Shown here one piece after another: positions 6,571 to 49,215 of a stretch of 64,000 nucleotides of DNA. Under the pieces are notes generated by a model that was given only the letters and a program-made list of their open reading frames with translations, had not been told where the DNA came from and searched no databases. This stretch comes from Macrostomum lignano (Eukaryota): assembly GCA_002269645.1 (NCBI GenBank), contig NIVC01000268.1:248001-312000 (forward strand), written 5' to 3'. The translations under genes and the position numbers were made by a program. The stretch's first letter is position 1; each line of letters starts with the position of its first letter.

Positions 6571-7158
6571 GCCCTCGTACCGGAGGACATGATCAACATT
6601 CGCCAGCTAGTCGAGCTGGACCTTGGCAACAATCGTCTAACATGTATTCCGGACGAGATTGAACTGCTCCAACGATTGGAGACCCTTGTGCTCAGTCACA
6701 ATAGCATCAATAAATTGACAGAAAAGATTGGCGGCTGCGTCTGCCTGCGTAGATTAGAGTTGGAATATAACGAATTGGAAACTCTGCCAGCTGAGATCGG
6801 CCACCTGAGCGAGCTGCGGGAGATCAATCTGATCTCTAATAAGCTCGCCACCATACCGCTGGGCATCACCCTGTTGCCGTTGGTGGTGCTCCGCCTGAGC
6901 GAGAATTGCATACGCGAGGTGCCCAGAGAGATCGGTCACATGACCAATCTGAAAGAGCTCTACCTGAATGATAACAGAGATTTGGAGAACTTACCATCCA
7001 CTTTGTCGCTGTGCTCAAAGCTTGAACTGCTCAATATTGAGCACTGTCGGCTCAGTCTAATACCGACCGAGATTGTCTCATGCGGCTCCAATGTTGTCAT
7101 GCAGTTTCTCAAGCAGGTGTATAATTACGAGAAGAATTGTCACGTGCAAGAGTTGTGA
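6571..7158 (+). CDS. SHOC2: SHOC2/Sur-8-like LRR protein, last exon
   Basis: Acceptor CTGCAG|GCC at 6570/6571 is in phase with the previous exon. Consecutive LRRs end ...LYLNDNRDLENLPSTLSLCSKLELLNIEHCRLSLIPTEIVSCGSNVVMQFLK, matching the SHOC2 C-terminal cap. Stop at 7156-7158. Confidence 0.88.
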   Translation, partial: ALVPEDMINIRQLVELDLGNNRLTCIPDEIELLQRLETLVLSHNSINKLTEKIGGCVCLRRLELEYNELETLPAEIGHLSELREINLISNKLATIPLGITLLPLVVLRLSENCIREVPREIGHMTNLKELYLNDNRDLENLPSTLSLCSKLELLNIEHCRLSLIPTEIVSCGSNVVMQFLKQVYNYEKNCHVQEL

Positions 7159-7741
7159 CAATCTATTTGAGCTAAGCTGTCATTTGAGAACAGCTTCTAC
7201 GACAATATTTATGCTTTGTTTCAATTCATAACATTTATTCTGTTTTTGTAGATTCTAAAAAATAATACTCTACTTTATCTTGCTTACTATCAGTAGCAAG
7301 TAAAGAAACTTAGCGATTTTTTGCAAAAATTACTATAAAATCTACCGTAACCAAGAAAGTGGCACCGGCCTTGAAAATTTGTTAAACTATTTAACTTTTT
7401 GTTTACCGGTTATACACTAACTACATTACTTATATTTAGTAGTTTATTGCAGGCTTTTGTTTGACAATTTTTTTCCGCCGATTTACACTATAGAATTTTT
7501 ATTTTAGATGTGCAATCGCTTTAAGATGACTCTGTCGTCTTTGACTTGTGTCGTGAAATTAAGATTATAATCATTAGCGTAAGAAATTGCTCTGAAATTT
7601 ATGCATGCAGTTTATTAATTAAGCTATGCTTATACCTGTCTGTTAAACTTTAAACACTGTTTTTTAATCGATTGCATCAATTCTTTAGAAGCTGGTTGAA
7701 ATAAACCATTACACTTTGTTAAGTATTGGACAAGTCGATAG

Positions 7742-7955
7742 GACAGACACTGAAAAACAGACACTGGCAGGCAGACATTGACAGACAGACAGTGGCAGAC
7801 AGACACTGGCAGGCAGACATTGACAGACAGACAGTGGCAGACAGACACTGGCAGACAGACACTGGCAGACAGACACTGGCAGACAGACACTAGCAGACAG
7901 ACACTGGCAGACAGACACTGACAGACAGACACTGGCAGACACTAGAACTGACAGA
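7742..7955. repeat. 14-bp-unit minisatellite (GACAGACACTGGCA) with GACA microsatellite
   Basis: Tandem copies read directly. Confidence 0.9.
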
Positions 7956-8969
7956 CCCCGAGTCGTTGACCTAGTTCATTTTTGTTTGCGCAATGTTCAA
8001 CAGATTTATGGGCTATTCTCAATTCTTGTTTTTGGTTTTGGCACCTATATATTTATTAGTTGCTTCTGCTCATGCTAATTATTCTCAGATGTTTTCTATT
8101 ACGGAGAAGTTTATATTTTTAATCCTATCCTTAGGTTTATTTAGCTTGCTGAAAGCCTTTTTGTCCTGTTCCTTAGCTTTTTGTGCAAGGCGCAAAAGTC
8201 GGTAATAAATAAATACACTATTTATTGAAATATTTATTAATATTTAGCCTATATATAGCCTAATTGTCTCCATGTGACCTTGCACTATTTTTCTAAACTT
8301 ATCATGTATATATTAATAATTAATTGATAGATTTCTAATCCTGCACGTCAGGCTGCTACAATATTTAAATAATCATATAATCCTGAATAATTAATATTTT
8401 TACTAATGCTTGTACATATTTTATCGGAATTTATCTTCTTAAAATCTACTTTATAAGTTAGTTTCAATTTTTGAATGCAACAAAACAAAAAACAATTAGC
8501 GCTAGGCCTTTTCCTCGCTCGTTTTGCGCATCCGGAAAGTGACCGCCGAAACCCATTTTTACACAAACATTTTTTAAAAATTTATATAGCAGCAAAATGT
8601 ACTGGATAAAACTTGCAGATCAGTGCAATAGTAAATTAATATTAATTCACGTAGATAATTTTAATTTTTATTAGAACAGCCTCCTTGAGCGCTTGCTGTA
8701 TTAGGCGCCATTTATTTCTTTTTGCTGCTTTTGTCCTTTTGTCCACCTTGTAAATAAACTTTTCCCTAAAGTTTGAAAAAAATTAAATATATTTCATAAC
8801 TTTAAACTTTATCCTTATGGCAAACATTCTTGGCATTGTTTCTTAATGTTTTTTGTCTTTAAAGCTGTATTACACTTCAAGTGCACACCCGTTTGTCTTG
8901 TAATAAAATTATTGATGCATGTTTCGTCACTTCAGCCAACTGAACCTCCGCTAAGCAATTGCTAAAGCA

Positions 8970-9963: not shown

Positions 9964-10435
9964 CCTGGACTATCACCATCAAATCGAAGAGCTGCAGCGC
10001 CGACTACGCGATCAACGCCAGTGCCTTAGCCGTCTAGAGTCTGACTTGGCCAGCGAGCGAGACTCGCGCCGCTCCGACTCGGAGCGCCAGACCGAGGACC
10101 TAGCCAGACTGCGCGATCGCTACGACCGCCTATTGGAGTCGCACAAACGGCTTAGCCGAGTCAACGCCGGCCTAGAAGAGAAACTCTTAGACTTAGCCGG
10201 CAAGTTCGATGCCGAGCAGCGAACTCTGCTAGATAAATTAGCCAGCTCAGAGACTAAACTGGCCGAGGCTGAGCAGACTGTCGAACGGCTCAAAATTGAT
10301 CGGGAACGATGCAAAACCGAATGCGAAATTGCTGTTAGAATGCTGCGAGCAAGGCCGGATGCTTATTTAACAGACGAGGATGCTGCAGCCGGAGGCACTC
10401 TGCTGGATGATGAATTACCGGCCAGTCGGGCTCAG
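9964..10435 (+). CDS. TJAP1: TJAP1/BEGAIN-like coiled-coil protein, exon 2
   Basis: Acceptor CCCCAG|C at 9963/9964. DLDYHHQIEELQRRL...RYDRLLESHKRLSRVNAGLEEKLL...ERCKTECEIAVRML resembles the TJAP1/BEGAIN coiled coil (..RRLQ.S......N..LEDKL...ERYRLDCNLAVQLL). Donor CAG|GTAAG at 10435/10436. Confidence 0.75.
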
Positions 10436-10469
10436 GTAAGGCTTATGCATACCGTTTATTAGGCTTTAT

Positions 10470-11340
10470 TATCGAGGGTTTAGAGTGACTCATTATCCAG
10501 GGTTTAAAGTGACTCAAATTATCTGAGTTTAGAATGACATTATCGAGGGTTTAGAGTGACTCATTATCAAGGGTTTAGAGTGACTCATTATCAATGGTTT
10601 AGAGTGACTCATTATCAATGGTTTAGAGTGACTTATTATCGAGGGTTTATAGTGACATTATCGAGGGTTTATAGTGACATTATCGAGGGTTTAGAGTGAC
10701 ATTATCGAGGGTTTATAGTGACATTATCGAGGGTTTAGAGTGACTCATTATCAATGGTTTAGAGTGACTCATTATCAATGGTTTAGAGTGACTTATTATC
10801 AATGGTTTAGAGTGACTTATTATCGAGGGTTTATAGTGACATTATCGAGGGTTTATAGTGACATTATCGAGGGTTTAGAGTGACATTATCGAGGGTTTAG
10901 AGTGACTCATTATCGAGGGTTTAGAGTGACTCATTATCTGGGTTTGGAGTGACTCATTATCGAGGGTTTAGAGTGACTTATTATCGAGGGTTTAGAGTGA
11001 CTCATTATCGAGGGTTTAGGGTGACTCATTATCTGGGTTTGGAGTGACTCATTATCGAGGGTTTAGAGTGACTTATTATCGAGGGTTTAGGGTGACTCAT
11101 TATCTGGGTTTGGAGTGACTCATTATCGAGGGTTTAGAGTGACTTATTATCGATGGTTTGGAGTGACTCATTATCGAGGGTTTAGAGTGACTCATTATCT
11201 GGGTTTGGAGTGACTCATTATCGAGGGTTTGGAGTGACTCATTATCTGGGTTTGGAGTGACTCATTATCGAGGGTTTAGAGTGACTTATTATCGATGGTT
11301 TGGAGTGACTCATTATCCAGGTTTTAGAGTGACTCATTGA
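10470..11340. repeat. Intronic minisatellite, 24/22-bp unit GAGTGA(CT)CATTATCGAGGGTTTA
   Basis: Tandem copies in TJAP1-like intron 2. Confidence 0.95.
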
Positions 11341-11467
11341 GAATCAAAGTCAAAGGTTTAGAGTGTATAGCGACTTTTAATTTCGATTTGGAGTGACCCA
11401 TTAGCGATGTTAGGTTCATAATGACTCTTGTTTAGAATAAATGATTGTTTAATTCATTCATTTTCAG

Positions 11468-11701
11468 ACGGTTTCAACCTCGTCCTACATGACGGTGCCG
11501 CTACCCACGTTTCCGCCTACATTTGCGCACTTCCCAACTCATAGCAATGTTTATAGCGGCACATCTGGCCAGCAGCGCCTGCAGATGCACAGAGCGGCCA
11601 GCGTAGGCGACACGAAATCTCTGGTGGCGGCTGCCGACGCGCTTAGAAACGGACCTGACGCGACCAGTGTGGCAATCAGGAGAGGCATATTCGATGTCTG
11701 A
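11468..11701 (+). CDS. TJAP1: TJAP1/BEGAIN-like protein, exon 3 (last)
   Basis: Acceptor TTTTCAG|ACG at 11467/11468, phase 0; contains VPLPTFPPT (family PTFPPT-like motif); stop at 11699-11701, followed by an AT-rich 3' region. Confidence 0.7.
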   Translation, partial: TVSTSSYMTVPLPTFPPTFAHFPTHSNVYSGTSGQQRLQMHRAASVGDTKSLVAAADALRNGPDATSVAIRRGIFDV

Positions 11702-12188
11702 GTGTTATATTTTAGTTTATTTCTGCAATATTATTAATTAATTTATCGGATTTACCTGCCATATATGTTTCTTTATTATTTTGTTGTTGTAAAACAGAAA
11801 AAGAAAGCATACACTTTAAACTCTACTTACTTGCAGTAGGTTTGTCTGTCTGTCTGTTTATTTGCAATTACTTTTGATTTCAGTTAATTATTTAATCAGT
11901 TCTCTTTTGCAAGGTTTGATATGATGACTATACATTTAGATATGATAATTTCTGCTTTCAAGTCCATGACTTCCTGCCTTCCTCGACCTGTTTAGTTAAT
12001 TATAAACTGTATTGGCCTCTTTCAAACAGCATTAAAAATGCAGCTGCAAAATTATTAATTTTTCGCGTTTGTTAATGTCGACATACTTTTTACCACAGAT
12101 AATTTATTTGGATTTAAAAACAAGAATTATTTTTGTTAATCACTTCCATGCCAAACTGATTTATTATATTTGAAATACAATTGGTACA

Positions 12189-14076: not shown

Positions 14077-17000
14077 CTAGGGGATGAGACAGTGAATGGG
14101 GGCGATGAGAGGCAGGGAATGGGGGGATGAGGGAATGGTGGGATGAGGGAATGGTGGGATGAGACAGGAAATGGGGGGATGAGACAGGGAATGGTGGGAT
14201 GAGACAGGGAATGGGGGATGAGACAGGGAATGGTGGGATGAGGGAATGGTGGGATGAGGGAATGGTGGGATGAGACAGGGAATGGGGGGATGAGACAGGG
14301 AATGGTGGGATGAGACAGGGAATGGGGGATGAGACAGGGAATGGTGGGATGAGACAGGGAATGGTGGGATGAGACAGGGAATGGTGGGATGAGGGAATGG
14401 TGGGATGAGACAGGGAATGGTGGGATGAGACAGGGAATGGTGGGATGAGACAGGGAATGGTGGGATGAGGGAATGGTGGGATGAGGGAATGGTGGGATGA
14501 GACAGGGAATGGGGGATGAGACAGGGAATGGTGGGATGAGACAGGGAATGGTGGGATGAGACAGGGAATGGTGGGATGAGACAGGGAATGGTGGGATGAG
14601 ACAGGGAATGGTGGGATGAGGGAATGGTGGGATGAGACAGGGAATGTTGGGATGAGACAGGGAATGGGGGATGAGGGAATGGTGGGATGAGACAGGGAAT
14701 GGTGGGATGAGACAGGGAATGGGGGATGAGACAGGGAATGGTGGGATGAGACAGGGAATGGTGGGATGAGGGAATGGTGGGATGAGGGAATGGTGGGATG
14801 AGACAGGGAATGGTGGGATGAGACAGGGAATGGTGGGATGAGACAGGGAATGGTGGGATGAGACAGGGAATGGTGGGATGAGACAGGGAATGGTGGGATG
14901 AGACAGGGAATGGTGGGATAAGACAGGGAATGGGGGATGAGACAGGGAATGGTGGGATGAGACAGGGAATGGTGGGATGGGACAGGGAATGGTGGGATGA
15001 GACAGGGAATGGTGGGATGAGACAGGGAATGGTGGGATGAGGGAATGGTGGGATGAGACAGGGAATGGTGGGATGAGGGAATGGTGGGATGAGACAGGGA
15101 ATGGGGATGAGACAGGGAATGGGAAATGGTGGGATGAGACAGGGAATAGTGGGATGAGACAGGGAATGGGGGGATGAGGGAATGGTGGGATGAGACAGGG
15201 AATAGTGGGATGAGACAGGGAATGGTGGGATGAGACAGGGAATGGTGGGATGAGACAGGGAATGGTGGGATGAGACAGGGAATGGTGGGATGAGACAGGG
15301 AATGTTGGGATGAGACAGGGAATGGGGGATGAGGGAATGGTGGGATGAGACAGGGAATGGTGGGATGAGACAGGGAATGGGGGATGAGACAGGGAATGGT
15401 GGGATGAGACAGGGAATGGTGGGATGAGGGAATGGTGGGATGAGGGAATGGTGGGATGAGACAGGGAATGGTGGGATGAGACAGGGAATGGTGGGATGAG
15501 ACAGGGAATGGTGGGATGAGACAGGGAATGGTGGGATGAGACAGGGAATGGTGGGATGAGACAGGGAATGGTGGGATGAGACAGGGAATGGTGGGATAAG
15601 ACAGGGAATGGGGGATGAGACAGGGAATGGTGGGATGAGACAGGGAATGGTGGGATGGGACAGGGAATGGTGGGATGAGACAGGGAATGGTGGGATGAGA
15701 CAGGGAATGGTGGGATGAGGGAATGGTGGGATGAGACAGGGAATGGGGGGATGAGGGAATGGTGGGATGAGACAGGGAATAGTGGGATGAGACAGGGAAT
15801 GGGGGGATGAGGGAATGGTGGGATGAGACAGGGAATAGTGGGATGAGACAGGGAATGGTGGGATGAGACAGGGAATGGTGGGATGAGACAGGGAATGGTG
15901 GGATGAGACAGGGAATGGTGGGATGAGACAGGGAATGGTGGGATGAGACAGGGAATGGGGGGATGAGGGAATGGTGGGATGAGACAGGGAATGGTGGGAT
16001 GAGGGAATGGTGGGATGAGGGAATGGTGGGATGAGACAGGGAATGGTGGGATGAGACAGGGAATGGTGGGATGAGACAGGGAATGGTGGGATGAGGGAAT
16101 GGTGGGATGAGACAGGGAATGTTGGGATGAGACAGGGAATGGGGGGATGAGGGAATGGTGGGATGAGACAGGGAATGGTGGGATGAGACAGGGAATGGGG
16201 GGATGAGGGAATGGTGGGATGAGACAGGGAATAGTGGGATGAGACAGGGAATGGGGGGATGAGGGAATGGTGGGATGAGACAGGGAATGGTGGGATGAGG
16301 GAATGGTGGGATGAGACAGGGAATGGTGGGATGAGACAGGGAATGGTGGGATGAGACAGGGAATGGTGGGATGAGACAGGGAATGGTGGGATGAGACAGG
16401 GAATGGTGGGATGAGACAGGGAATGGTGGGATGAGACAGGGAATGGTGGGATGAGACAGGGAATGGTGGGATGAGACAGGGAATGGTGGGATGAGACACA
16501 GGGAATGGGGGATGAGAGACAGGGAATGGGGGATGAGAGACAGGGAATGGGGGGGTGAGGGAATGGTGGGATGAGACAGGGAATGGGGGATGAGGGAATG
16601 GTGGGATGAGACGGAATGGGGGATGAGGGAATGGTGGGATGAGACGGAATGGGGAGATGAGTCACAGGGAATGGGGAGATGAGTCACAGGGAATGGGGAG
16701 ATGAGACACAGGGAATGGGGAGATGAGGGAATGGGGGGATGAGGGAATGGTGGGATGAGACGGAATGGGGAGATGAGTCACAGGGAATGGGGAGATGAGT
16801 CACAGGGAATGGGGAGATGGGTCACAGGGAATGGGGAGATGAGACACAGGGAATGGGTAGATGAGTCACAGGGAATGGGGAGATGAGTCACAGGGAATGG
16901 GGAGATGAGTCACAGGGAATGGGGAGATGAGACACAGGGAATGGGGAGATGAGACACAGGGAATGGGGAGATGAGACACAGGGAATGGGGAGATGAGACA

Positions 17001-17645
17001 CAGGGAATGGGGAGATGAGACACAGGGAATGGGGAGATGAGACACAGGGAATGGGGAGATGAGACACGGGGAATGGGGAGATGAGTCACAGGGAATGGGG
17101 AGATGGTACACACGGAATGGGGAGATGAGACAGGGAATGGGGAGATGAGACAGGGAATGGGGAGATGAGTCACAGGGAATGGGGAGATGAGACACGGGGA
17201 ATGGGGAGATGAGTCACAGGGAATGGGGAGATGGTACACACGGAATGGGGAGATGAGACAGGGAATGGGGAGATGAGACAGGGAATGGGGAGATGAGTCA
17301 CAGGGAATGGGGAGATGAGACAGGGAATGGGGAGATGAGACAGGGAATGGGGAGATGAGACACAGGGAATGGGGAGATGAGTCACAGGGAATGGGGAGAT
17401 GGTACAGGGAATGGGGAGATGAGACAGGGAATGGGGAGATGAGACACAGGGAATGGGGAGATGAGACACAGGGAATGGGGAGATGAGACACAGGGAATGG
17501 GGAGATGAGTCACAGGGAATGGGCAGATGGTACACACGGAATGGGGAGATGAGACAGGGAATGGGGAGATGAGACACAGGGAATGGGGAGATGAGACACA
17601 GGGAATGGGGAGATGAGTCACAGGGAATGGGGAGATGACACAGGA
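14077..17645. repeat. 3.5-kb G-rich intronic minisatellite: 20/16-bp units GATGAG(ACAG)GGAATGGTGG, then about 22-bp units GAGATGAGACACAGGGAATGGG
   Basis: Fills almost all of AGPAT5 intron 4 (14041-17662); source of the spurious 860-890 aa ORFs. Confidence 0.97.
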
Positions 17646-17662
17646 AATGAAATGAAACCAAC

Positions 17663-18114
17663 CTGTCTTTCTCAGCGAAGACTCCATGCAGCCAGCTGGC
17701 CACCTCCTCCTGATTTCGCCTGGGCACCAGATCCATAGGCAGTCTACGCAGATGAATATGCAGCGTGCGACGCCGTTTAAACCAGGAGAACAATTGTGGC
17801 ACGTTTTTACCACCGGTGAAGCCTTCATAAGCGATGGTGATGTCATACACTGCGTCAAAATAGTTAGCCAGAGTGTTGAGAGTCAGGTAGGTGCCTTTTA
17901 CTCGCGGAGTCAGGTGGTAGCGCAGCTGCTGCAGCCCGTGGCTGGTGGCGAACTCCTGAGACTTTTTAATCACCGCCGGTTTATCATAGTTAATCCGGGT
18001 GCCCTCGGGGAAAATGATCACCCAGGAATTGGTGTTGTTGGCTTCGAGCGATTTCAGCGAGCGGACAGCTTGATCGGCTTTGAATTCGCTGCGATTGACG
18101 AATATGCAGCCGTG
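17663..18114 (-). CDS. AGPAT5: AGPAT5 exon 4
   Basis: HGCIFVNR...IFPEGTR...HLTPRVKG...AVYDITIAYEG...LHGVFAEKDR (motifs II-IV); donor AG|GTTGGT, phase 2. Confidence 0.95.
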
Positions 18115-18154
18115 CTGCGAATTGGAATGGGGGCAGCGGGCTGTATGGGGGAAT

Positions 18155-18585
18155 GAGGCTGGCCTAGCAACTGGGGATCTGGGAGGCTGGCCTAGCAACT
18201 GGGGATCTGGGAGGCTGGCCTAGCAACTGGGGATCTGGGAGGCTGGCCTAGCAACTGGGGATCTGGGAGGCTGGCCCAGCAAATGAGGATCTGGGAGGCT
18301 GGCCTAGCAACTGGGGATATGGGAGGCTGGCCCAGCAACTGGGGATCTGGGAGGCTGGCCCAGCAACTGAAGCTCTGGGAGGCTGGCCCAGCAACTGAGA
18401 ATCAGGACTCAGGAGGCTGGCCTAGCAACTGGGGATTTAGGAGGCTGGCCTAGCAAATGGGGATTTAGGATGCTAGCTTAGAATTGGGGATCTGAGAGGC
18501 TGGCCTAGAAATTGGGGATCTGGGAGGCTGGCCGAGAATTGAGGATCTGGGAGGCTGGCCTAGCAACTGGGAATCTAGGAGGCTC
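18155..18585. repeat. Intronic minisatellite, 28-bp unit CTAGCAACTGGGGATCTGGGAGGCTGGC
   Basis: Tandem copies in AGPAT5 intron 3. Confidence 0.95.
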
Positions 18586-22393: not shown

Positions 22394-22715
22394 GGGGTTT
22401 TAGATTATAGTGGTTATAGAGAGCGTCGGACTCACGACTTGAAAAGGTCGGGGGTTCGATCCCCGATCCACTCGAAACAATATTTGTGTCCTTGAGCAAG
22501 ACACTTAACTCTCTGCATTGCTTCAGTTCACCCAGAGCTGTAAAATGGGTGCCAGCATTAGCTGGGGTAATTGAGGGTGTGTGTGGTGACCCTCCAGTCC
22601 CAGCCGTACGCATGCAGCCTTCAGATGCGCCGCGCAATAGCTGAGGCTGAGAGCTGTCGCGGTTGCACATCTGCCCATTATGACAGGTGTAATTGTGACT
22701 GTGACTGTTATTATT
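22394..22715 (+). mobile_element. tRNA-derived SINE with CORE-like central domain
   Basis: A-box-like TAGTGGTTATAGAG; B box GGTTCGATCCC (22453-22463); GTGTCCTTGAGCAAGACACTTAACTCTCTG...CTGTAAAATGGG (22486-22551) resembles the MIR/CORE consensus GTGACCTTGGGCAAGTCACTTAACCTCTCTG...CTGTAAAATGGG; tail (GTGACT)2 GTTATTATT. Confidence 0.75.
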
Positions 22716-26702: not shown

Positions 26703-27082
26703 ATTATATTATATTTTTATATAAGATCTATGATCGCGAGTAAATGAAAGGATTGATTTATCATCATCTTTGTTGCATTGAATTTGAATGTTCAATAAGC
26801 AAAATGATATTTTTTTAAAATTTATCACAATTATGGTATACAGCTTGTAACTCAACCGTAGACTCATTTAAACCTGCCAACAAATGAAGACAATATTGTC
26901 TGTTGAATTTTAGCGTCAATTCTGCGTTAACACACGACTTGTACATATCACACACTTCACTTTGCACATCAGCTGCGCGACGATGTAATTCTTTCATGGC
27001 TAGAAAAACTCAAAGTTGTATTTTTCAAAGATAAAAACAATATTTGAACAATTTCAGCTTACAAATCGGTTTGGAAACAAAG

Positions 27083-28537
27083 ATGACAACATCGAGCTCT
27101 CTCACCATTCCTGCGGTGGGCCATCCATTCACCCTTGGTGCACTGTACAACAGCAGGACCAGCCAAATCATCCCCGGAGTCAAGTTATTCACCGCTGAGC
27201 AGATGCAGACTATGCTGACCGAAACTAAGAACATCAGCATGGAGACCGATATCGTCACAGAAACGTCAGCGAACAGCAAAAACCTGAGCACAAAAGTGAC
27301 CGGAAATCTGTCGCTGTCAATTCTATCGGGACTGGTGTCCGCTAGCGGCTCCGGGAACTACCAGACTACCTTAAAAGAGAAGAAAGAGACGGAGAGCGCC
27401 ATATATCGACTGCAAGTTCAAGGAAAGTATTGGGAACTTGTTGTCCCACCGGATTTGAAGCTGAAGAGCTCAGCGAGCTACAAAGATGCCACTCACGTAG
27501 TAATGGGAATTCAGTACGGCGGAGCCGCTCTGTTCTTTTTCGAGCGGGACAAAGAAGACTCCGCAACGAGCGACAAAACCGGAGGCGGTCTAAAAGCTCA
27601 GATTGGCAAGTTTGCATCGTTGGTCAGCATCTCTGGAGCTGCCTCGCTTGACATGACGTCGGAGGAAACGAAAGTCGTGCAGAAGATCCGAGTTGCCTAC
27701 AAGGGAGACTTCCACCTGGCCAGCCCACCGACCAACTTCATTGAAGCCATGAAGTGCATTCAAACAATCCAAGCTGCTGAAGCTAGATCGCCACTGACGG
27801 TCAACCTGCTTCCTCTGTCACTGCTGGTTGAAGACACTCCACCAGCGCCCCTGCCACTACCGCCCACGTGCATCTGCAAAACTGTTCGCTGCTACGAAGT
27901 GCTGAAAGAAGCTCTGACTACTCTGGAGGAAATTATTTACAAGCTGAGACCGACAGCGTGGACTCACGTGGTGAAGAAGCTGGAAGCGGAAGTTCGGGAG
28001 CTCGAATCATTCAAGTCTTCCCTTGATGATGCTGTGAGGGAAGCTGTTCTAGATCACACGACTGAGCCTTCCAATCAAGCGAGCAAAATCGGGTTGAAAA
28101 CGGACCTTTTCGACGCTGGAAAAAAGTACGCTCACCTACAGGAATGGGCCACCGCAGTCGCCGATACCGGTGACGTTCTGGTTGTGATTTCCAATAAGTT
28201 CCGAGAGGCTGGCGCCCAGATAATTAAAAGCCAGGCCCAGAGAGCCGAATTCATCATGAGGAGCATGACAGAACCAAACCAAAAGATGTACTGCCTGTCT
28301 TGCCCGATGAAATTGTTTGAACTGCAAAAGTTCGAGCACCAAGTTGAATTGAAACTCTGGAACAACAAACAGCTCGAGAAGAAATTTTACAAAAAGTTAG
28401 TAGAATATTGCCCCACGCCAGGGAATCAAAAGCTCAAATTGGTGCAACCTCTAGTAGCTGTTGAGCAATCCGAGGTTCCTGATTCTGACGCATCCGGAGT
28501 GCAGGTGACCTTCCGGAACCTCTCATCGGATTCCTGA
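27083..28537 (+). CDS. Stonustoxin/verrucotoxin-like MACPF/CDC pore-forming-domain protein A (484 aa, intronless CDS, no signal peptide)
   Basis: LTIPAVGHPFTLGALYNSRTSQIIPG, LSLSILSGLVSASGSGNY, ATHVVMGIQYGGAALF, YKGDFHLASPPTNFIEAMK and PLTVNLLPL align with SNTX hallmarks (MPALGRPFTLGMLYD, LGVSFLGGLVEVGGSAKY, ATHVVTSILYGANAFF, FHGDFLLESLPTTFEDAVK, PMKVWLAPL). Confidence 0.88.
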   Translation: MTTSSSLTIPAVGHPFTLGALYNSRTSQIIPGVKLFTAEQMQTMLTETKNISMETDIVTETSANSKNLSTKVTGNLSLSILSGLVSASGSGNYQTTLKEKKETESAIYRLQVQGKYWELVVPPDLKLKSSASYKDATHVVMGIQYGGAALFFFERDKEDSATSDKTGGGLKAQIGKFASLVSISGAASLDMTSEETKVVQKIRVAYKGDFHLASPPTNFIEAMKCIQTIQAAEARSPLTVNLLPLSLLVEDTPPAPLPLPPTCICKTVRCYEVLKEALTTLEEIIYKLRPTAWTHVVKKLEAEVRELESFKSSLDDAVREAVLDHTTEPSNQASKIGLKTDLFDAGKKYAHLQEWATAVADTGDVLVVISNKFREAGAQIIKSQAQRAEFIMRSMTEPNQKMYCLSCPMKLFELQKFEHQVELKLWNNKQLEKKFYKKLVEYCPTPGNQKLKLVQPLVAVEQSEVPDSDASGVQVTFRNLSSDS

Positions 28538-29559
28538 ATTAGATTGACGGCACCCTTGTTTGTGAGTATCGACAATATTCGATTGTGAAAACGTGAACTG
28601 GCGAAATTTTGCTATTTCTAATTGACGAAACTGTAGAGTCGAGACGTAGATTTTTTGCCTTGGAATTTTCACATTCACAAGTTTTTATATCAAGTGTTTA
28701 CAGCTTGTTAAATTTTCAACTAGCTAAAGCTACTTGACTTGCCGTGGATTTTTTACAACATTTATTTTTCGCGACAGCAAGTTGAGCAGAATAAGCCGCG
28801 GTTAGTACACATATTCTACTACTGCTAATATACATTTACGCTAATAACCCAGAACATTATTGAGTTGTTAAATCAATAAAGTTTATTTTATTCGCACCTA
28901 TAAATAAGTGATTTTTATTTTTATTTTCACCATAGATTTTTTAGTACCTGTGCTTTTTACTAATTATTCTGATCCTTCTTGCTCAACTTACTCGCGTGTT
29001 TCTTATTCAGTAAATTGCATGCGTTCTACGAGCGTAATTAAATTTTAACTTTAAAAAAGTAAAAAAACAAAAAAACATGAACTTTCTTTGTTTAATAAAC
29101 AGTATACTCCAATTTATATTAACTATACGTGTGTGATGTGGGTTTAGTTTTTTAAGCAGGCATATTTTTTCACTGTCACTAACCTTTAAGCATGTAATCC
29201 AGATTCGTAGCAATTAAATATTTGCTCTCAGTAAGTATATTAATAAAAATACCGATTGTTGAACAAAACTTTGTTTTCTTCTTTTATATTTTTGATTGGC
29301 TAGTGCGCAAAGAATCATATTAGAAGAATAGCTACGTAGCATCTCCTTTGTATAAAACATATTTAGTTCCCTTAACCCAAGACACAACATCGACCCTTCC
29401 TGGAGAAATCGTTAGTGGGCATGTTAAAGCGGTAGAACTTTAAAAAGGATTTATTCCTATTACTTTATATAATTACATTTTCAAAAGATGCAAACCCTTT
29501 TCTCGCACTAACAATCATTTGCCAAACATTTCAGCACAATCCTGACGAACGACTTCAAC

Positions 29560-31584
29560 ATGCAGACTCAACCGGAGTGCATCCCGTCTCTGGGCCGGGC
29601 CTTTCAGCTCGGACAGATGTACGACATCCGACAGCACCGGATCATTGCACAGTCGGCCTGGCCCACAGATCGAATTCGGCGAATGACGACTCGGCTGGAT
29701 GATGCGCCCAGCGTGAGGTTTTCTCTGGACTACGAGTACAGCTCGAAGCGCCGAGCGGAACAGCTGGGGCTGAACGCCCAGCTGAGGTTTTGCATTGAGT
29801 TCAAATTGGCCTGGTGGAAACTCGGCGAGAAGTCAATGACAGGATCAGCAAAATACGTCACCGAGGCAAGCTCCAACGAGACCAGTGGAAGCGTCACTTT
29901 GCAGTACGACGTGAAGGGTCCGTTTGAAGAGCTTCAGTGCTGCAACGAGCCTGTAGACAATGAGAAGAAGTTACTAAGCACTGGTGCAACACACGTTGTG
30001 ACAGGAATCCGGTACGGAGGCAAGGCGTTCATTGTCTGCAAAGGCTGGTCCAATGCGTCCAGCTTCTTCGAGCGAGCAACATCTGACTGTCATGAACTGG
30101 TAGATTGGAAGGTGGAACAGTGGATCAGAGATGCTGGGCAGTCTGCCAGATCATTCGCTAAATTTGACTTGCCGAACCGCTCAAGTTCTGGCAGTTATCA
30201 GATCGAATGTCACACCGACTTCAAGCAGCCAAGGAAGACCATGAGAGAGCCACCAGATGTTTTAGAGTATTTTAAATCGTTAGATTCAAGGGATGCAAAC
30301 AAAGCAATGGAAATTCATCTCACTCCATTGCGCTACTTTTGCCCGTCGGTTCCAGCTTCAGTCCCAATGGCAAAAACGCAGCATCTGGAAGATGCCTGCC
30401 AGTACCTTCAAGCGTTGAAGGCCGGCTTTGAACAGTCCGAGGATCTTTTGGACAAGATCAGCCGGGAGGCAGAGTTGAACATTTCAATCGGAGAGACACT
30501 GCATGGCTACAAGAGAGAGCTGGACACTCATGTGAGCGAGTACACACAGCGGATGCAACAAAGTTTTGTGAATCATCGCACTTCGGACGAGTTTGCTGAA
30601 GCTCATCACGCCGGCAGTTTAGACAGCGTCTTCACCTACAGCAGCATGGACACCTCTTTGAACATGTTTGGTCGCCAAACTACCGACCTCTGCGATTTAA
30701 GTGCAAAGCTTCGACAGGGTATTGACGCTACAAGCGCGGAAGAACTTGAGACAAAAGCAGAAAGATTGGCAAAGGAAATCGAAGACCTGTTCAGCATACA
30801 CGACTCGAACAAGCAGCTCCAAGAGCAAATGTGCCCAGGACAGAGCCACTTTAGAATTAAGCGCACCAGAATCGAAGAAAGAAGTCGGGATGATCGGTCC
30901 TGCATCACTTGGTGCATCAGGTGTCGAAGTACGTGTCATGCAAACTGTGGCGTGCCGAATAATGAGGATAAAGCAAGGTGTGGTGCTATGAAACCTAATG
31001 GATACTGTAAAGAGTGCGACTGCCACTGGAGGCTTCACCGGAACACCAGCACCGAACAGAGAGAGGTTGAACACTACGAATTTGTTCCCATTGACAGAGT
31101 GAGCAAGAAGTATGGAGAAAATCCGAACCAGCGCGGTGCTGTGAGGCGTCTCAAGTATCACCTTGGAATGGACGCGAAGATGGCTTTGCAGAAAACGGCC
31201 TACGAACTCGTGAAAGCGCACAGGTGCTTGAAAGGCCTGCACCAGGACGTCAACTTGGATCAGTTCATTAGAGACAAGCTTCGGTCCAAGCGGCTCGATC
31301 CAGAAGATTCCTCCAAGTTGATTCAGCTGACCAAAGCTATCGATGCACGAGTTGAGGATAGAACCGATTACGCTAGGTTTGAATGGCAGTCACGAAGGCA
31401 GGAACCTCCGACAACGCCGCCGACATTTGGTGCAGTAGGAGTAGTCGCCGGTGATGTACATGGACGCCTCTCTGCAGGTTTTCCTGGTGTCGGTGCATTC
31501 GGTTCTGCTTGGCACGAAAGGCCCACCAGGCGACAAAATCGGGATTCAAATCCTCAGTCTGATTCGGAGTGCGTTATTAGTTGA
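29560..31584 (+). CDS. Stonustoxin-like MACPF/CDC protein B with Cys/His-rich module and C-terminal CaaX (674 aa, intronless CDS)
   Basis: IPSLGRAFQLGQMYD, TGSAKY, ATHVVTGIRYGGKAFIV and MEIHLTPL are SNTX hallmarks; helical region; CITWCIRCRSTCHANC...C...CKECDCHWRLHRN; ends ECVIS*. Confidence 0.85.
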   Translation: MQTQPECIPSLGRAFQLGQMYDIRQHRIIAQSAWPTDRIRRMTTRLDDAPSVRFSLDYEYSSKRRAEQLGLNAQLRFCIEFKLAWWKLGEKSMTGSAKYVTEASSNETSGSVTLQYDVKGPFEELQCCNEPVDNEKKLLSTGATHVVTGIRYGGKAFIVCKGWSNASSFFERATSDCHELVDWKVEQWIRDAGQSARSFAKFDLPNRSSSGSYQIECHTDFKQPRKTMREPPDVLEYFKSLDSRDANKAMEIHLTPLRYFCPSVPASVPMAKTQHLEDACQYLQALKAGFEQSEDLLDKISREAELNISIGETLHGYKRELDTHVSEYTQRMQQSFVNHRTSDEFAEAHHAGSLDSVFTYSSMDTSLNMFGRQTTDLCDLSAKLRQGIDATSAEELETKAERLAKEIEDLFSIHDSNKQLQEQMCPGQSHFRIKRTRIEERSRDDRSCITWCIRCRSTCHANCGVPNNEDKARCGAMKPNGYCKECDCHWRLHRNTSTEQREVEHYEFVPIDRVSKKYGENPNQRGAVRRLKYHLGMDAKMALQKTAYELVKAHRCLKGLHQDVNLDQFIRDKLRSKRLDPEDSSKLIQLTKAIDARVEDRTDYARFEWQSRRQEPPTTPPTFGAVGVVAGDVHGRLSAGFPGVGAFGSAWHERPTRRQNRDSNPQSDSECVIS

Positions 31585-34089: not shown

Positions 34090-34680
34090 GGTACATGGGG
34101 GCACTATGGGGGAGAGCCCATTGGTGAGGGCACAGGGGCATTTGGGAGAGAGGTCAGAGAGCGCAGCGGTGAAGGAGGGCACGGGGGTATGGGGGAGGTC
34201 ATATGGGCAATGGGGAAAGTACAGGGATATGGGGATAGCTGATCACATAGATTTTGGGGGGGGGGAGGTCACATGGGTATTGGGGGAGGTCGGTTGGATG
34301 TGGAGGAGGGGGTTAAATGGGGGGTCACATGGATATGGTGTGGGGGCCGCATGGATATGGACGAGGGGTATTGGGGTCACATGGGTGAAGGAGGGTTATG
34401 GGGGAGGGGTCATATGGGTATGGAGGGGGGTTATGGGGGAGGGGTCATATGGGTATGGAGGGGGGTTATGGGGGAGGGGTCATATGGAAGAGGGGTCATA
34501 TGGAGGAGGGGTCATATGGGTATGGAGGGGGGTTATGGGGGAGTCATATGGGTATGGAGGAGGGTTATGGGGGAGGGGTCATATTGGTATGGGGAGGCCT
34601 ATGGGAGGAGGGGTCCCATTGGTATGGAGGGGGGTTATGGGGGGAGGGGTCACATGGATATGGAGGAGGACACAGCTAGA
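34090..34680. repeat. Degenerate G-rich minisatellite (about 33-35-bp unit GGTTATGGGGGAGGGGTCATATGGGTATGGAGG)
   Basis: Read directly; open in all three + frames with different low-complexity products. Confidence 0.85.
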
Positions 34681-35387
34681 GGTACAGATATAAATGCTAT
34701 TAATTAACTTGAGAAAGCGAATAGTTGATACGTACGAGTGTAGCCACTGTCTCATGCAAGGCAAGAAAACTGTACTGTGCGAATCGGTTATCTAATTCTA
34801 AATTAATTAGTTTAGCTCAAAATAGATCTTTACCAGTCGACACACTACTGGCTAGTAGCATATGTTAACTTTTGTTTCACTGGTGACGTCATAAATGTAG
34901 CTTCAGAACGCTATAATTAATTGCAACTAATGGTATAAACTGAAGCTTCTGTCGCCTATGGCGTGTAATATACTAAAACAACACTGTCAAAGAGGCTTGA
35001 AATTTAGTTACGAGTAGCTAAGATGTCTAGTGATATAAAATATACATCATGATTTTTAGCAACGCTATTTATTTTCATTAAAACTTTTTTATTTAAACAA
35101 AAGAATACCATTAAATGAATAGGATATCAAACTATGAAAGTTTAATGAAATAATTTATATAGATACAAGTAAGAGTTTCCCTAATAGGTTAAGAAAGTGT
35201 ATAGCTTTTTGAGTATATTCTCTTGCTACACAAAACTTGTACACAAAGCAAAGCCTGATTATTCCAAGTACTCGTAAAACATGTTAACAAAGTCTATACG
35301 AAAAATTCTTTTTTCCAAGAAGGTACAGAATGCTTACTAGGATAACTCGCTATTAGGAATGATCGCTACTAGAGAATGACTCAGAAC

Positions 35388-46774: not shown

Positions 46775-49215
46775 CTAAAGCCAATTGACGCTATGGAGAT
46801 TGACCCACCCACAATCCGTACCCAACGCCAACTCCGCCCTCCTGGAGACCTTCATCCAGTCTAGGAACCTCGTCGGAGTGAATGGCTCTCTACGGCAGCG
46901 GCTCGCGAAGCTTCTAACTTTCTTCGGCCCAAACGGCAGAACGACAAGGCTGGACTGGATCCTCTGCCCTTTTCCGTTGCGTTCTAGAGTGCGCAAAGTG
47001 ATCAACATCCGCCCCAGATGCGTCGCTTCCGACCACAGCTTGGTTGCCTGCGAACTGAACCTCTCGTGGACGAGATTCAGACGCCCCCCGCCGAAGCCTC
47101 TCTGGGCAGACCTGAGGAACCCAGAGACTCGCACTGACTTCCTGACCGAGCTCTCCAACGCGAGCCCCGCCATCACCGAGACAGCTGAGGCCTTTGCGAA
47201 TGCCGTCGGGTCGGCAGCGTCAGTTCTGCCTAGACAAATAGGACACCAGCCAAGGGCACTTTGGGACTGCGACGCCGTGATCGCCACTACCAGACGCTCT
47301 GCACAGAGCGCCGCTGCGCGTCACGGCGAGGACAGCGACCAGGCTAGACTCGCCAGAGACAACCTGCAGGCGACGTACGCCCAACGCACTGAATTATTTA
47401 TTGAGGAGGCGGTCCAGGAGATCCAGGCCGCCACCGACAACTGCCGGCACACCGCTGCCTGGCGAGCAATCAACCGCCTCACAGGACGAAGACCCCGTCC
47501 GACCACAGTCGTTGGCGCTGAGTCCATAGAGCAAAGAAAGAGCCTGCTTGTCGACCACTACCGGCAAGTTTTAAATGCCCCCTCCCCGACGTCTCCCCTT
47601 CTCCCGGCCGCCGGCTTCACCCCAGCTCAGCATGGCGACTTCTACACCGGCCCGATCACCGCCGCGGAAGCTACCAAGGCGCTGAAGAGCATGCGCGCTG
47701 ACGCTGCCTCTGGAGTCGACCGAGTGCCTCCCAGGGTTCTGAAGTTGCCAGAGCTTACAGACAGCATTACTAGCATCCTGAACAAGTACTGCTGTCTCGG
47801 CGGCGACCCAGCTGCTATGGCCGCCCCCCTCTGGCGTACTTCAAGAATTGTCTCCATCCCGAAGAAGGACGCCTCCACGAGCCTTGACAACCAACGCGGT
47901 ATCGCACTGGAGTGCACGCTGCCAAAGCTGCTGAACGCAGTGTTGTGCAATCGGCTCCTCCCTGTCCTGAACTCGCTGCTACTCGAGCTTCAAAGTGGCT
48001 TCAGGCCAGGAAGATCCACTACGGAGCAGATTGTGGCCATTCGGTGCATTGTCGAAACCTGCAAGACTCGTCTTCGAGCCGTGTCTATCGTCTTCGTTGA
48101 CTTCCGGAAGGCCTTCGACTCTGTCAGCAGGACGGCCTTAGCCTGGCTCCTGGCTCAGTACGGCGTCCCCGACACCCTGGTGACGGCAGTTATGGACCTG
48201 TGCCACAACTCCAAGGCGTTTGTCGACTCCAGCGATGGCCCTACGGACGAGTTTGATACCACTTCCGGGGTGCTGCAAGGGGACACGCTATCTCCCCTGC
48301 TTTTCATTCTGGCTGTTGACTACATCTTGCGCCGCTGCCTTTGAGACGACGACAGCTTTGTCCTCGCGCCTCAGCGTAGCTCCCGCCACACTGCCGTGAC
48401 GCTCCCAGCCCTCGCCTATGCTGATGACATCGCGCTGCTGTGCCGAGACCCTGTAGCAGCCCAGCACGCTCTTACTCGACTCTCCGAGGAAGGCGCCCGG
48501 ATCGGCTTGCAGATTAACACAGGCAAGACGGAGGTGCTGCACGTGGGTGCTGACAATGCCCCACCGCTGACCCTGCCCAACGGCGAGGCCATTTCAACGT
48601 GCAGCGACTTCCGCTACCTAGGCACCCTCGTAATGAGCCCAGAGGCGATCATCGCGGACAGGAGGACCCAGGCCTGGCGCGCCATGCACCACCTCAGGCC
48701 GATCTTCACCTCCGGAGGGCGGGACGACCTGAAGATCCACCTGTTCCGCGCCGCTGTAGAGCCGATCCTTCTCCACGGCATGGAGGCTGTCCCGATGACA
48801 ACCACGCGAGAACGGGCCCTGGACGCGATGCACCGCAACCTGCTGCGCAAGGCGCTGGGCGTGCGCTACCCGACCGTCCTCTCGACGGCCCAGCTGATGG
48901 CGAGATCGAAATCACCGTCCCTCAGCGCCACCCTCCGCCGGCGCCGCCAGGCCCTGCTGGGACACTGCCTGCGGCGGTTCGCCCGCGGCGACGACAACCC
49001 GCTTGGACTGGCCATTCTGCATCCGCCGACCGAACGGTTCCGCCGCGGCCAAGGGCGGACCCAGACGCTCCGGGAGACTCTTGTCGCCGACCTGGAGGCA
49101 ATTGGACTGACCCCCCAGACTGCTGCGACCTGCCCTGCCCCTCTTTTTTGCAATCGTGTGCGCTTGTACCCCCCGACCCTAGCGTCGTTGTAATGTAATG
49201 TAATGTAATGTAATG
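46775..49215 (+). mobile_element. 5'-truncated RTE-like LINE (APE C-terminus + RT), nearly intact, one internal stop, (TGTAA)n tail
   Basis: TFFGPNGRTTRLDWIL...SDH (endonuclease), NQRGIAL, QSGFRPGRST, FVDFRKAFDSV, GVLQGDTLSP, LAYADD, RRRRQALLGHCLRR. TGA at 48342-48344 lies between two same-frame ORFs. Tail at 49189-49215. Confidence 0.92.

Follow-up and report, generated by a model that had tools for sequence, protein, structure and literature searches.

Two neighbouring genes for proteins of the stonustoxin (SNTX) type lie at positions 27083-31584 of the 64,000-nucleotide stretch of Macrostomum lignano DNA analysed here, the whole of which is called the window. Gene A (27083-28537, plus strand) is a single-exon coding sequence (CDS) of 484 amino acids (aa), counted from the first ATG, plus stop, and encodes an SNTX-like MACPF protein. 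Gene B (29560-31584, plus strand), also a single-exon CDS (674 aa plus stop), codes for an SNTX-like MACPF protein that is divergent and carries a Cys/His module as well as a CaaX box. The two open reading frames (ORFs) are arranged head to tail on the same strand, with a gap of 1,022 nucleotides (nt) between them. The proteins are 22% identical over ~445 aligned positions, and their C-termini are unlike each other. Each CDS is collinear with its homologues throughout, with no break, and the gene model of B', the counterpart of B on M. lignano contig NIVC01004600.1, is one exon of 2,052 nt coding for 683 aa. Among the long M. lignano paralogues described below, P0017 is encoded by a single exon of 3,636 nt and the P0007 gene is spliced. 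No hydrophobic N-terminal stretch or transmembrane-like segment was found in A or B (maximum Kyte-Doolittle value over 19 residues, KD(19), ~1.0), and in both proteins the alignment starts at SNTX residue 2-8. A read-through fusion of A with B via the GT at 28505 was considered and rejected, since a manual check of the sequence placed it out of frame with B. No more SNTX-like exons were found elsewhere in the window.

Searches of the Protein Data Bank (PDB) with phmmer matched A to stonustoxin chain 4wvm_B at E 1.8e-32 (aa 4-300) and B to stonustoxin 4wvm at E 3.8e-12 (aa 8-348); stonustoxin was the sole solved structure matched by the two sequences. AlphaFold2 models of A and B were built from family alignments, and Foldseek was run with them against the PDB. 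The model of A had a mean predicted local distance difference test score (pLDDT) of 80 and a predicted template modelling score (pTM) of 0.75. That of B had a mean pLDDT of 69, with the domains well modelled and the tail disordered. Foldseek aligned 4wvm with the model of A at E 2.5e-19 over 389 columns (TMq 0.60) and with the model of B at E 5e-13 over 386 columns, and these alignments of 386-389 columns take in the helical (FAT-like) domain of both proteins. For both models 4wvm_B and 4wvm_A were at the top of the ranking, followed by other MACPF/CDC structures. It can also be seen from the alignment that the signature ATHVV-G-I-x-YG(A/G)-x-A-F and the N-terminal motif LGRPFxLGxLYD are present in A and B; the T, the H and the second G of YGG in this signature are invariant or nearly invariant across the family. 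The Pfam model MACPF_SNTX (PF24674) remained below its gathering score in both proteins (21 bits against a cut-off of 27 in B, no match in A); this model is weak for invertebrate members, and clear long members of the family score merely 26-40 bits. Pfam Stonustoxin_helical gave no match in A or B, nor did the thioredoxin-like (THX) and PRYSPRY domains, and no thioredoxin-like remnant was detected in the tail of A or the middle of B with a local THX profile of the family. When the window was searched by tblastn with fish SNTX-like proteins, the MACPF parts were matched and nothing else. By homology and by fold, A and B belong to the stonustoxin branch.

An earlier note on this DNA had described two head-to-tail, intronless ORFs at these coordinates, about 1 kb apart, in a flatworm, and had assigned both to the SNTX-type MACPF/CDC proteins while remarking on their strong divergence, unlike C-termini and lack of signal peptides. 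This description holds. The arrangement and spacing were found as described, the family membership is borne out by the 4wvm matches in sequence and in predicted fold, and the Foldseek comparison with SNTX that had been suggested as a check gave a MACPF/CDC fold for both proteins with 4wvm as the top match. The absence of introns agrees with the unbroken collinearity with homologues and with the single-exon model of B', the absence of signal peptides with the lack of a hydrophobic N-terminus, the divergence with the 22% identity, and the flatworm host with the 87% identity of B to a Macrostomum lignano protein.

In protein A, the MACPF/CDC domain with the ATHVVMGIQYGG signature occupies aa 1-250 (27083-27832, plus strand); its pLDDT is mostly above 90 and its top Foldseek match is 4wvm_B. 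The two transmembrane hairpin regions, TMH1 and TMH2, lie at about aa 56-92 and aa 156-204. TMH1 is 37 aa long, a length invariant in the family, and the beta-amphipathicity lies within the family range. Residues 261-396 (27863-28270, plus strand) form a helical bundle which, according to AlphaFold2 and Foldseek, is the equivalent of the FAT-like helical domain of SNTX; the modelled helices are at 261-288, 294-323, 329-344, 348-375 and 384-396. The C-terminal tail (aa 404-484; 28292-28534, plus strand) ends in NLSSDS, has a pLDDT below 50 and shows no detectable homology: phmmer returned zero matches with it, there was no THX match, and it carries no CaaX box. A also lacks the stalk and the Cys/His module that are found in B, and is probably soluble.

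Protein B begins with a divergent MACPF/CDC domain with the ATHVVTGIRYGG signature (aa 1-260; 29560-30339, plus strand), identified by the 4wvm matches and the AlphaFold2 model. Its TMH1 measures 44 aa, including a 7-aa insertion, and its TMH2 measures 53 aa against a family median of 48; both regions have a beta-amphipathicity inside or above the family range. On these sequence features, both A and B keep what a MACPF domain would need for inserting two beta-hairpins. There follow, as AlphaFold2 helices, a helical domain (aa 273-340) and a long helical stalk (aa 345-425), together spanning aa 273-425 (30376-30834, plus strand). Residues 366-546 of B align with aa 978-1160 of the long-family protein P0006 at E 1.6e-23, and the stalk of B corresponds there to the stalk behind the GTPase. 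A Cys/His-rich beta module (aa 430-510; 30847-31089, plus strand) is modelled with a pLDDT of 91-96. Its conserved residues C452, C455, C459, H460, C463, C474, C483, C486, C488, W490 and H493 are in invariant or nearly invariant columns of the family, and it fits the family pattern C-x2-C-x3-CH-x2-C-x10-C-x8-C-x2-C-x(1-3)-C-x-W-x2-H with all invariant ligands present. The module matched no Pfam family and nothing above noise, and its profile found no sequence relative in the PDB, only coiled-coil noise and a faint C1-domain match. It probably binds two zinc ions, as suggested by its ten conserved Cys/His residues, eight ligands being needed for two sites.

Behind the module, aa 511-670 of B (31090-31569, plus strand) are modelled as C-terminal helices and then as a disordered Gly/Pro-rich linker. 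The protein ends in the CaaX box CVIS (aa 671-674; 31570-31581, plus strand), a predicted farnesylation site with the stop codon directly after it. It has the Cys at -4, the aliphatic residue at -2 and a final S, one of the residues (S/M/Q/A) that direct farnesyltransferase. B' ends in CTIS. The last 17 residues of B and B' are identical at 14 of 17 positions, while the ~30 residues before them can barely be aligned. The CTIS box of human GBP1 is farnesylated (PMC2903825, PMC2998424). Across the family, a Cys at -4 occurs in 10 of the 107 proteins with a complete C-terminus, about 2.3% being expected from the Cys frequency (binomial p 2e-4), and CaaX-like ends include CVIM, CVIQ, CIIV, CFIF and CTIA. 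B is thus predicted to be farnesylated and probably sits at the cytosolic leaflet of a membrane.

With B as the query, an exhaustive HMMER search gave 546 relatives at E <=1e-3. A word-indexed protein search was insensitive in comparison, returning 3 matches for A, 2 for B and 3 for a Macrostomum-clade profile and missing the M. lignano paralogues. Many of the best relatives are proteins of ~1,150-1,300 aa which match B twice, once with the N-terminal MACPF domain and once with aa 430-560. Pfam orders the domains of these long proteins as MACPF_SNTX, Stonustoxin_helical, Thioredoxin_11, fn3 and a weak Septin/AIG1/MMR_HSR1 GTPase, followed by ~250 aa that are unannotated. The full layout of ~1,200 aa is therefore SNTX-MACPF, helical, thioredoxin-like, FN3, septin/AIG1-type GTPase, stalk and Cys/His module. 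For the GTPase of P0007 the nearest solved structures are septins and Toc34. The long family was found in teleosts, bichir, sturgeon, tuatara, a crab, a tardigrade, a rotifer and, with three proteins, M. lignano itself (PAA80612, here P0017; PAA60539, P0007; PAA54514, P0144); Gouania XP_028328301 and Scylla KAK8378025 are further members. Proteins with the GTPase and the Cys module and without a MACPF domain also exist, e.g. in oyster. Among the proteins retrieved by the HMMER search with B and by related look-ups, 62 combine MACPF and the Cys module, and the sole one of these without a GTPase match is B' (P0004), which is built like B.

Neither A nor B gave a Pfam match to FN3 or to a GTPase domain, and no P-loop motif, either GxxxxGK[ST] or GK[ST], is present in them. 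Since FN3 and the P-loop GTPase are missing, A and B are derived, truncated members of the family. The MACPF domain and early helical region of A match P0017 and P0007 at E 1e-42 to 1e-46, as against 1e-12 for B. In a neighbour-joining tree A clusters with P0017, P0007 and P0144, and B and B' form an isolated long branch, the position of which is not settled. These results indicate that A and B did not arise as a recent duplicate pair but by separate shortening of long-family members. A retains the MACPF and helical domains and has a short unique tail. B lost the thioredoxin-like domain, FN3 and the GTPase core and retains the stalk, the Cys/His module and the CaaX box, a combination (MACPF, stalk, Cys/His module and CaaX, without GTPase) that is unique among the relatives examined, bar B'. 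The earlier note overlooked this truncation: both genes are derivatives of a larger MACPF-GTPase family. No description or function of the MACPF-GTPase architecture, of the Cys/His module or of these Macrostomum genes was found in the literature. B-like relatives on Logan contigs were rejected as pairs, since they are ordinary long family genes split by gene calling. The vertebrate models P0055, P0034/P0155, P0057 and P0008 contain two or three MACPF domains and are either true multi-MACPF proteins or merged tandem genes.

The pair occurs a second time in M. lignano, on contig NIVC01004600.1 (locus L001), where A' (7458-8893) and B' (10025-12052) lie ~1.1 kb apart. B is 87% identical in protein sequence to B' (BOX15_Mlig004669g4, P0004), and A is 90% identical to A' in the N-terminal part and 82% in the C-terminal part. 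DNA similarity between the window and L001 is concentrated on both ORFs (~91.5%), whereas the non-coding DNA is collinear and merely 67-70% identical where it can be aligned. A collinear block upstream of B with ~70% identity (29154-29439, plus strand) is candidate regulatory or outron sequence. The 58 nt directly before the ATG of B are an exception in the non-coding DNA, matching L001 at 95% identity. The window and the L001 contig have no flanking genes in common. Nonsynonymous (dN) and synonymous (dS) divergence from L001 was compared by the Nei-Gojobori method. dN/dS was 0.46 for A and 0.39 for B, with dS of 0.14-0.17, and dN was significantly lower than dS in both (Fisher p 2e-4 for A and 2.5e-8 for B). 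The most constrained part of B is the MACPF domain (0.22) and the fastest-evolving part is aa 521-674 (0.70); aa 251-484 of A are still conserved with A' (0.42). Recurrence of the pair, which the earlier note had named as a point to check, is therefore borne out within this genome by an A-B unit at L001 with purifying selection on both ORFs.

The non-coding divergence (at least 30%) between window 27083-31584 and L001 7455-12052 is far above dS (~0.15). This excess possibly reflects gene conversion limited to the CDS, constraint on synonymous sites or fast turnover of the non-coding DNA. The low dS without shared flanks may result from gene conversion between A-B cassettes or from movement of the pair as a unit. 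A repeat of ~200 nt (84% identical) is found upstream of A in the window (22468-22672) and between A' and B' in L001 (9267-9466); it is probably a small mobile element that adds to spacer turnover.

In M. lignano, the acceptor motif [T/C]TNCAG is enriched at spliced leader (SL) trans-splice sites, and genes that follow each other on one strand are called as operons when the repeat-adjusted distance between them is <=1 kb (PMC8629364). Upstream of A there is a TTTCAG 3' splice-acceptor motif (27052-27057, plus strand), with which the exon would begin at 27058, 25 nt before the ATG. Upstream of B, a branch-point-like CTAAC element and a TTTCAG acceptor (29529-29534) lie within 29502-29534 (plus strand), with the exon start at 29535, again 25 nt before the ATG. 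In each case TTTCAG is the lone [T/C]TNCAG in the 200 nt upstream of the ATG, the frequency of the motif being 0.0027 per nt in the window. The acceptor and the CTAAC element of B are conserved in L001, and the M. lignano model P0004, marked 'partial', begins at the first whole codon after the acceptor AG of B'. The presence of a conserved consensus acceptor at the start of an M. lignano transcript model makes SL trans-splicing of B likely, and the motif upstream of A makes it possible for A. The P0017 gene has a TTGCAG acceptor 24 nt before its ATG (L002 9976-10000), and a short fixed spacing from acceptor to ATG may be a trait of the family in Macrostomum. The first AATAAA after the stop of A (28875-28880, plus strand) is a candidate poly(A) signal by sequence match only. 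The acceptor of B lies 997 nt beyond the stop of A, right at the 1-kb operon limit, and ~650 nt beyond this AATAAA; co-transcription of A and B is possible.

Several other features of the window were recorded. A G-rich satellite of 3.5 kb with a 20-nt unit, GGGATGAGACAGGGAATGGT, in ~182 copies occupies 14081-17649 (also 18155-18584) and is followed by a 28-nt array. This satellite gives rise to an extreme GC skew and to long spurious minus-strand ORFs. Together with the 28-nt array it abuts or overlaps an ORF with acyltransferase Pfam matches (17170-18198, minus strand). An apparently largely intact Pao/BEL-type long terminal repeat retrotransposon lies at 58410-63521, with a 1,415-aa ORF containing DUF1759, RVT_1 and Peptidase_A17, followed by an ORF with an integrase zinc-binding domain. 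None of A, B and the Pao polyprotein had an exact match in the protein collection searched. Two adjoining ORFs with RVT_1 halves (46785-49193), in a GC-rich block at 46-52 kb, probably represent another retroelement that is broken. At 34373-34669, ~8.6 copies of a G-rich 35-nt unit form a tandem array inside the ORF 34106-34693, which has no Pfam match and is probably not a gene. A 189-aa ORF at 6589-7158 has strong leucine-rich-repeat matches (LRR_8, 1.7e-18) and is probably an exon of a larger gene of this kind.

A cytosolic, membrane-directed role for the pair is, by inference, well supported. The reading that we prefer, with a probability of roughly 0.5, is that A and B are two functional, probably trans-spliced genes for cytosolic proteins of the stonustoxin branch, B being tethered to a membrane and A being a soluble protein and a possible second subunit. 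The analysis establishes the domain identities, the predicted folds, the lack of signal peptides, purifying selection, the recurrence of the pair and the conservation of the CaaX box and the Cys/His ligands; prenylation, zinc binding, pore formation, cytosolic action, co-expression and contact between A and B are what we infer for the pair. Several points weigh against this reading. TMH1 of B exceeds by 7 aa a length that is otherwise invariant at 37 aa, and a Cys at -4 is present in merely ~9% of the complete-ended members, so that prenylation is no family-wide rule. A is nearer to the long paralogues than to B, and those could be its natural partners instead. The pair is known at two closely related loci (dS ~0.15), which says little on long-term linkage. 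A' has a 1-nt deletion in an A-run and no M. lignano gene model, and is otherwise open to the same region; the 1-nt gap could stem from an error of the assembly or from a recent lesion. L001 has no conserved counterpart of the acceptor of A upstream of A', and a canonical poly(A) signal is absent within 1.2 kb after B.

In the mechanism that may be proposed, the A-B unit would be inherited together and perhaps co-transcribed. Through a farnesyl group B would be anchored on the cytosolic side of a membrane, where its stalk and Cys/His module might aid oligomerisation or the recognition of lipid or protein. Once there, MACPF domains would oligomerise, each driving its two TMH hairpins into the membrane from the cytosolic side, and soluble A might join the B-nucleated assemblies as a second subunit. 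The target membrane could be that of an organelle, a pathogen-containing vacuole or the plasma membrane, and the setting immunity or regulated cell death. The septin/AIG1-type GTPase, the zinc-type module and the occasional CaaX boxes of the parent family fit cytosolic proteins and are reminiscent of immune GTPases, which gather on the membranes of pathogens or organelles. The intracellular location put forward in the earlier note gains independent support from the conserved CaaX box of B and from the cytosolic-type GTPase and Cys/His module of the parent family. Its division into one effector and one targeting subunit stands in part. B has a predicted membrane anchor and the Cys/His module and A has neither, so that the asymmetry is real; the division of labour itself is not shown, and the TMH regions of both proteins are beta-amphipathic within the family range. 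The analogy with SNTX alpha/beta that the earlier note drew is weak, as A and B are not sister copies and have no THX or PRYSPRY, and A groups with long GTPase-bearing paralogues. The fullest form of the proposal is that farnesyl-anchored B nucleates pores on the cytosolic face which A joins, the pair being a two-component intracellular MACPF system, a GTPase-free offshoot of a GTPase-coupled MACPF family serving cell-autonomous immunity or cell death. We consider this form doubtful.

A serious rival is that A and B are independent paralogues, each forming its own homo-oligomers or acting with other partners of the family, their adjacency being a by-product of local duplication. It has to be taken seriously because the pair is known at shallow divergence only and because the closest relatives of A are long proteins: A is not a sister of B but groups with P0017, P0007 and P0144. 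The vertebrate models with two or three MACPF domains, in addition, suggest that tandem arrays are common in the family. However, the A-B unit recurs amid different flanks, as if it had been kept or moved whole, and no second SNTX gene was found within 10 kb of the long M. lignano paralogues, so pairing is not the rule of this genome. The spacing from acceptor to ATG is, besides, equal in A and B. On balance we regard independent paralogues as somewhat unlikely. It is also conceivable that B, and perhaps A too, lacks a GTPase because it regulates the long MACPF-GTPase proteins or serves as their decoy. It would co-assemble with them by way of the stalk/Cys module or the MACPF face, cap or seed their oligomers and form no pore of its own. 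B does keep the post-GTPase stalk and the Cys/His module without the GTPase, and its MACPF domain, an isolated long branch with altered TMH lengths, is nevertheless under the strongest constraint (dN/dS 0.22). Heterotypic control of localisation is known for prenylated and non-prenylated GBPs (PMC2998424). Against such a role, TMH1 of B is strongly beta-amphipathic and the MACPF signature is intact, with no sign of a lost ability to insert, and a regulator or decoy seems to us quite unlikely.

Two further explanations are disfavoured. SNTX is a venom component despite its absent signal peptide, and SNTX-like transcripts are listed among putative toxins in nemerteans and cerianthids; A and B might likewise be a defensive or predatory toxin that leaves the cell by holocrine or unconventional secretion, with no need of a signal peptide. 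But they have no PRYSPRY, the domain by which SNTX first engages its target cells (PMC8704401), the CaaX box and the Cys/His zinc-type module of B are typical of cytosolic proteins, and the parent family bears a GTPase. A secreted toxin is accordingly improbable. The least probable explanation, to which we give hardly any weight, is that one or both ORFs are decaying, functionless remnants (pseudogenes) of long family genes. Truncation of both relative to the family, the frameshift in A' together with its missing gene model, and the absence of any A-like entry from the protein collection would agree with decay. It is difficult to reconcile with intact ORFs of 484 and 674 codons, with dN significantly below dS in both, or with conservation that sits on the ORFs while the non-coding DNA has diverged to <=70% identity. 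A' also stays open to the same region past its single 1-nt homopolymer gap, and the Cys/His ligands and the CaaX box have been kept.

A and B resemble stonustoxin alpha/beta (4wvm) and the fish SNTX-like cytolysins in the MACPF/CDC signature, the layout of the TMH regions, the helical FAT-like domain and the absence of a signal peptide, and stonustoxin also in being encoded by two neighbouring, differing subunit-like genes. In contrast, the stonustoxin subunits are ~700 aa long and are close duplicates with thioredoxin-like and PRYSPRY domains, whereas A and B are 22% identical and have neither domain. Where the stonustoxin subunits have THX and PRYSPRY, B carries the stalk, the Cys/His module and the CaaX box. 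The true parent is the long SNTX-MACPF/FN3/GTPase/Cys-His family. The MACPF domain of A is closest to its M. lignano members (E ~1e-42 to 1e-46), and B shares with it both the MACPF domain at the N-terminus and, at the C-terminus, the stalk with the Cys/His module; CaaX-like ends also occur in some members. The FN3 domain, the GTPase P-loop and a detectable thioredoxin-like domain are missing from A and B. With GBP1, GBP2 and GBP5 the analogy is functional only. These are cytosolic immune proteins sent to pathogen or organelle membranes by a CaaX box, which in GBP1 (CTIS) is the same as in B', and prenylated and non-prenylated GBP paralogues form hetero-oligomers. The GBPs are not homologous to A and B, however, being dynamin-type GTPases without a pore-forming domain, while B is without a GTPase. 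Gasdermins and MLKL are again functional analogues only. They too lack a signal peptide and act on membranes from within the cytosol, but their folds are unrelated and their mode of activation is another, and A and B show no evident switch by cleavage or phosphorylation.

Proteins of the perforin superfamily are known as secreted or lumenal effectors, and to our knowledge the missing signal peptide of the stonustoxin branch has never been explained. Outside fish, SNTX-like MACPF proteins have been known just as database entries and as transcriptome 'toxin' matches in nemerteans and cerianthids. The locus ties the stonustoxin branch to a broad animal family in which MACPF is fused with a septin/AIG1-type GTPase and a zinc-type module, and sometimes with a prenylation box. 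The combination of MACPF, GTPase and zinc-type module points to cytosolic action, and we found no paper describing it. The Macrostomum pair is a small, GTPase-less version made up of a soluble protein and a probably lipid-anchored one, in a tractable model organism amenable to transgenesis and RNA interference, and could reveal whether MACPF attacks membranes from the cytosolic side and what the role of the long family is. If true, a two-component intracellular MACPF system would be the perforin-superfamily counterpart of the gasdermin and MLKL executioners or of GBP-guided attack.

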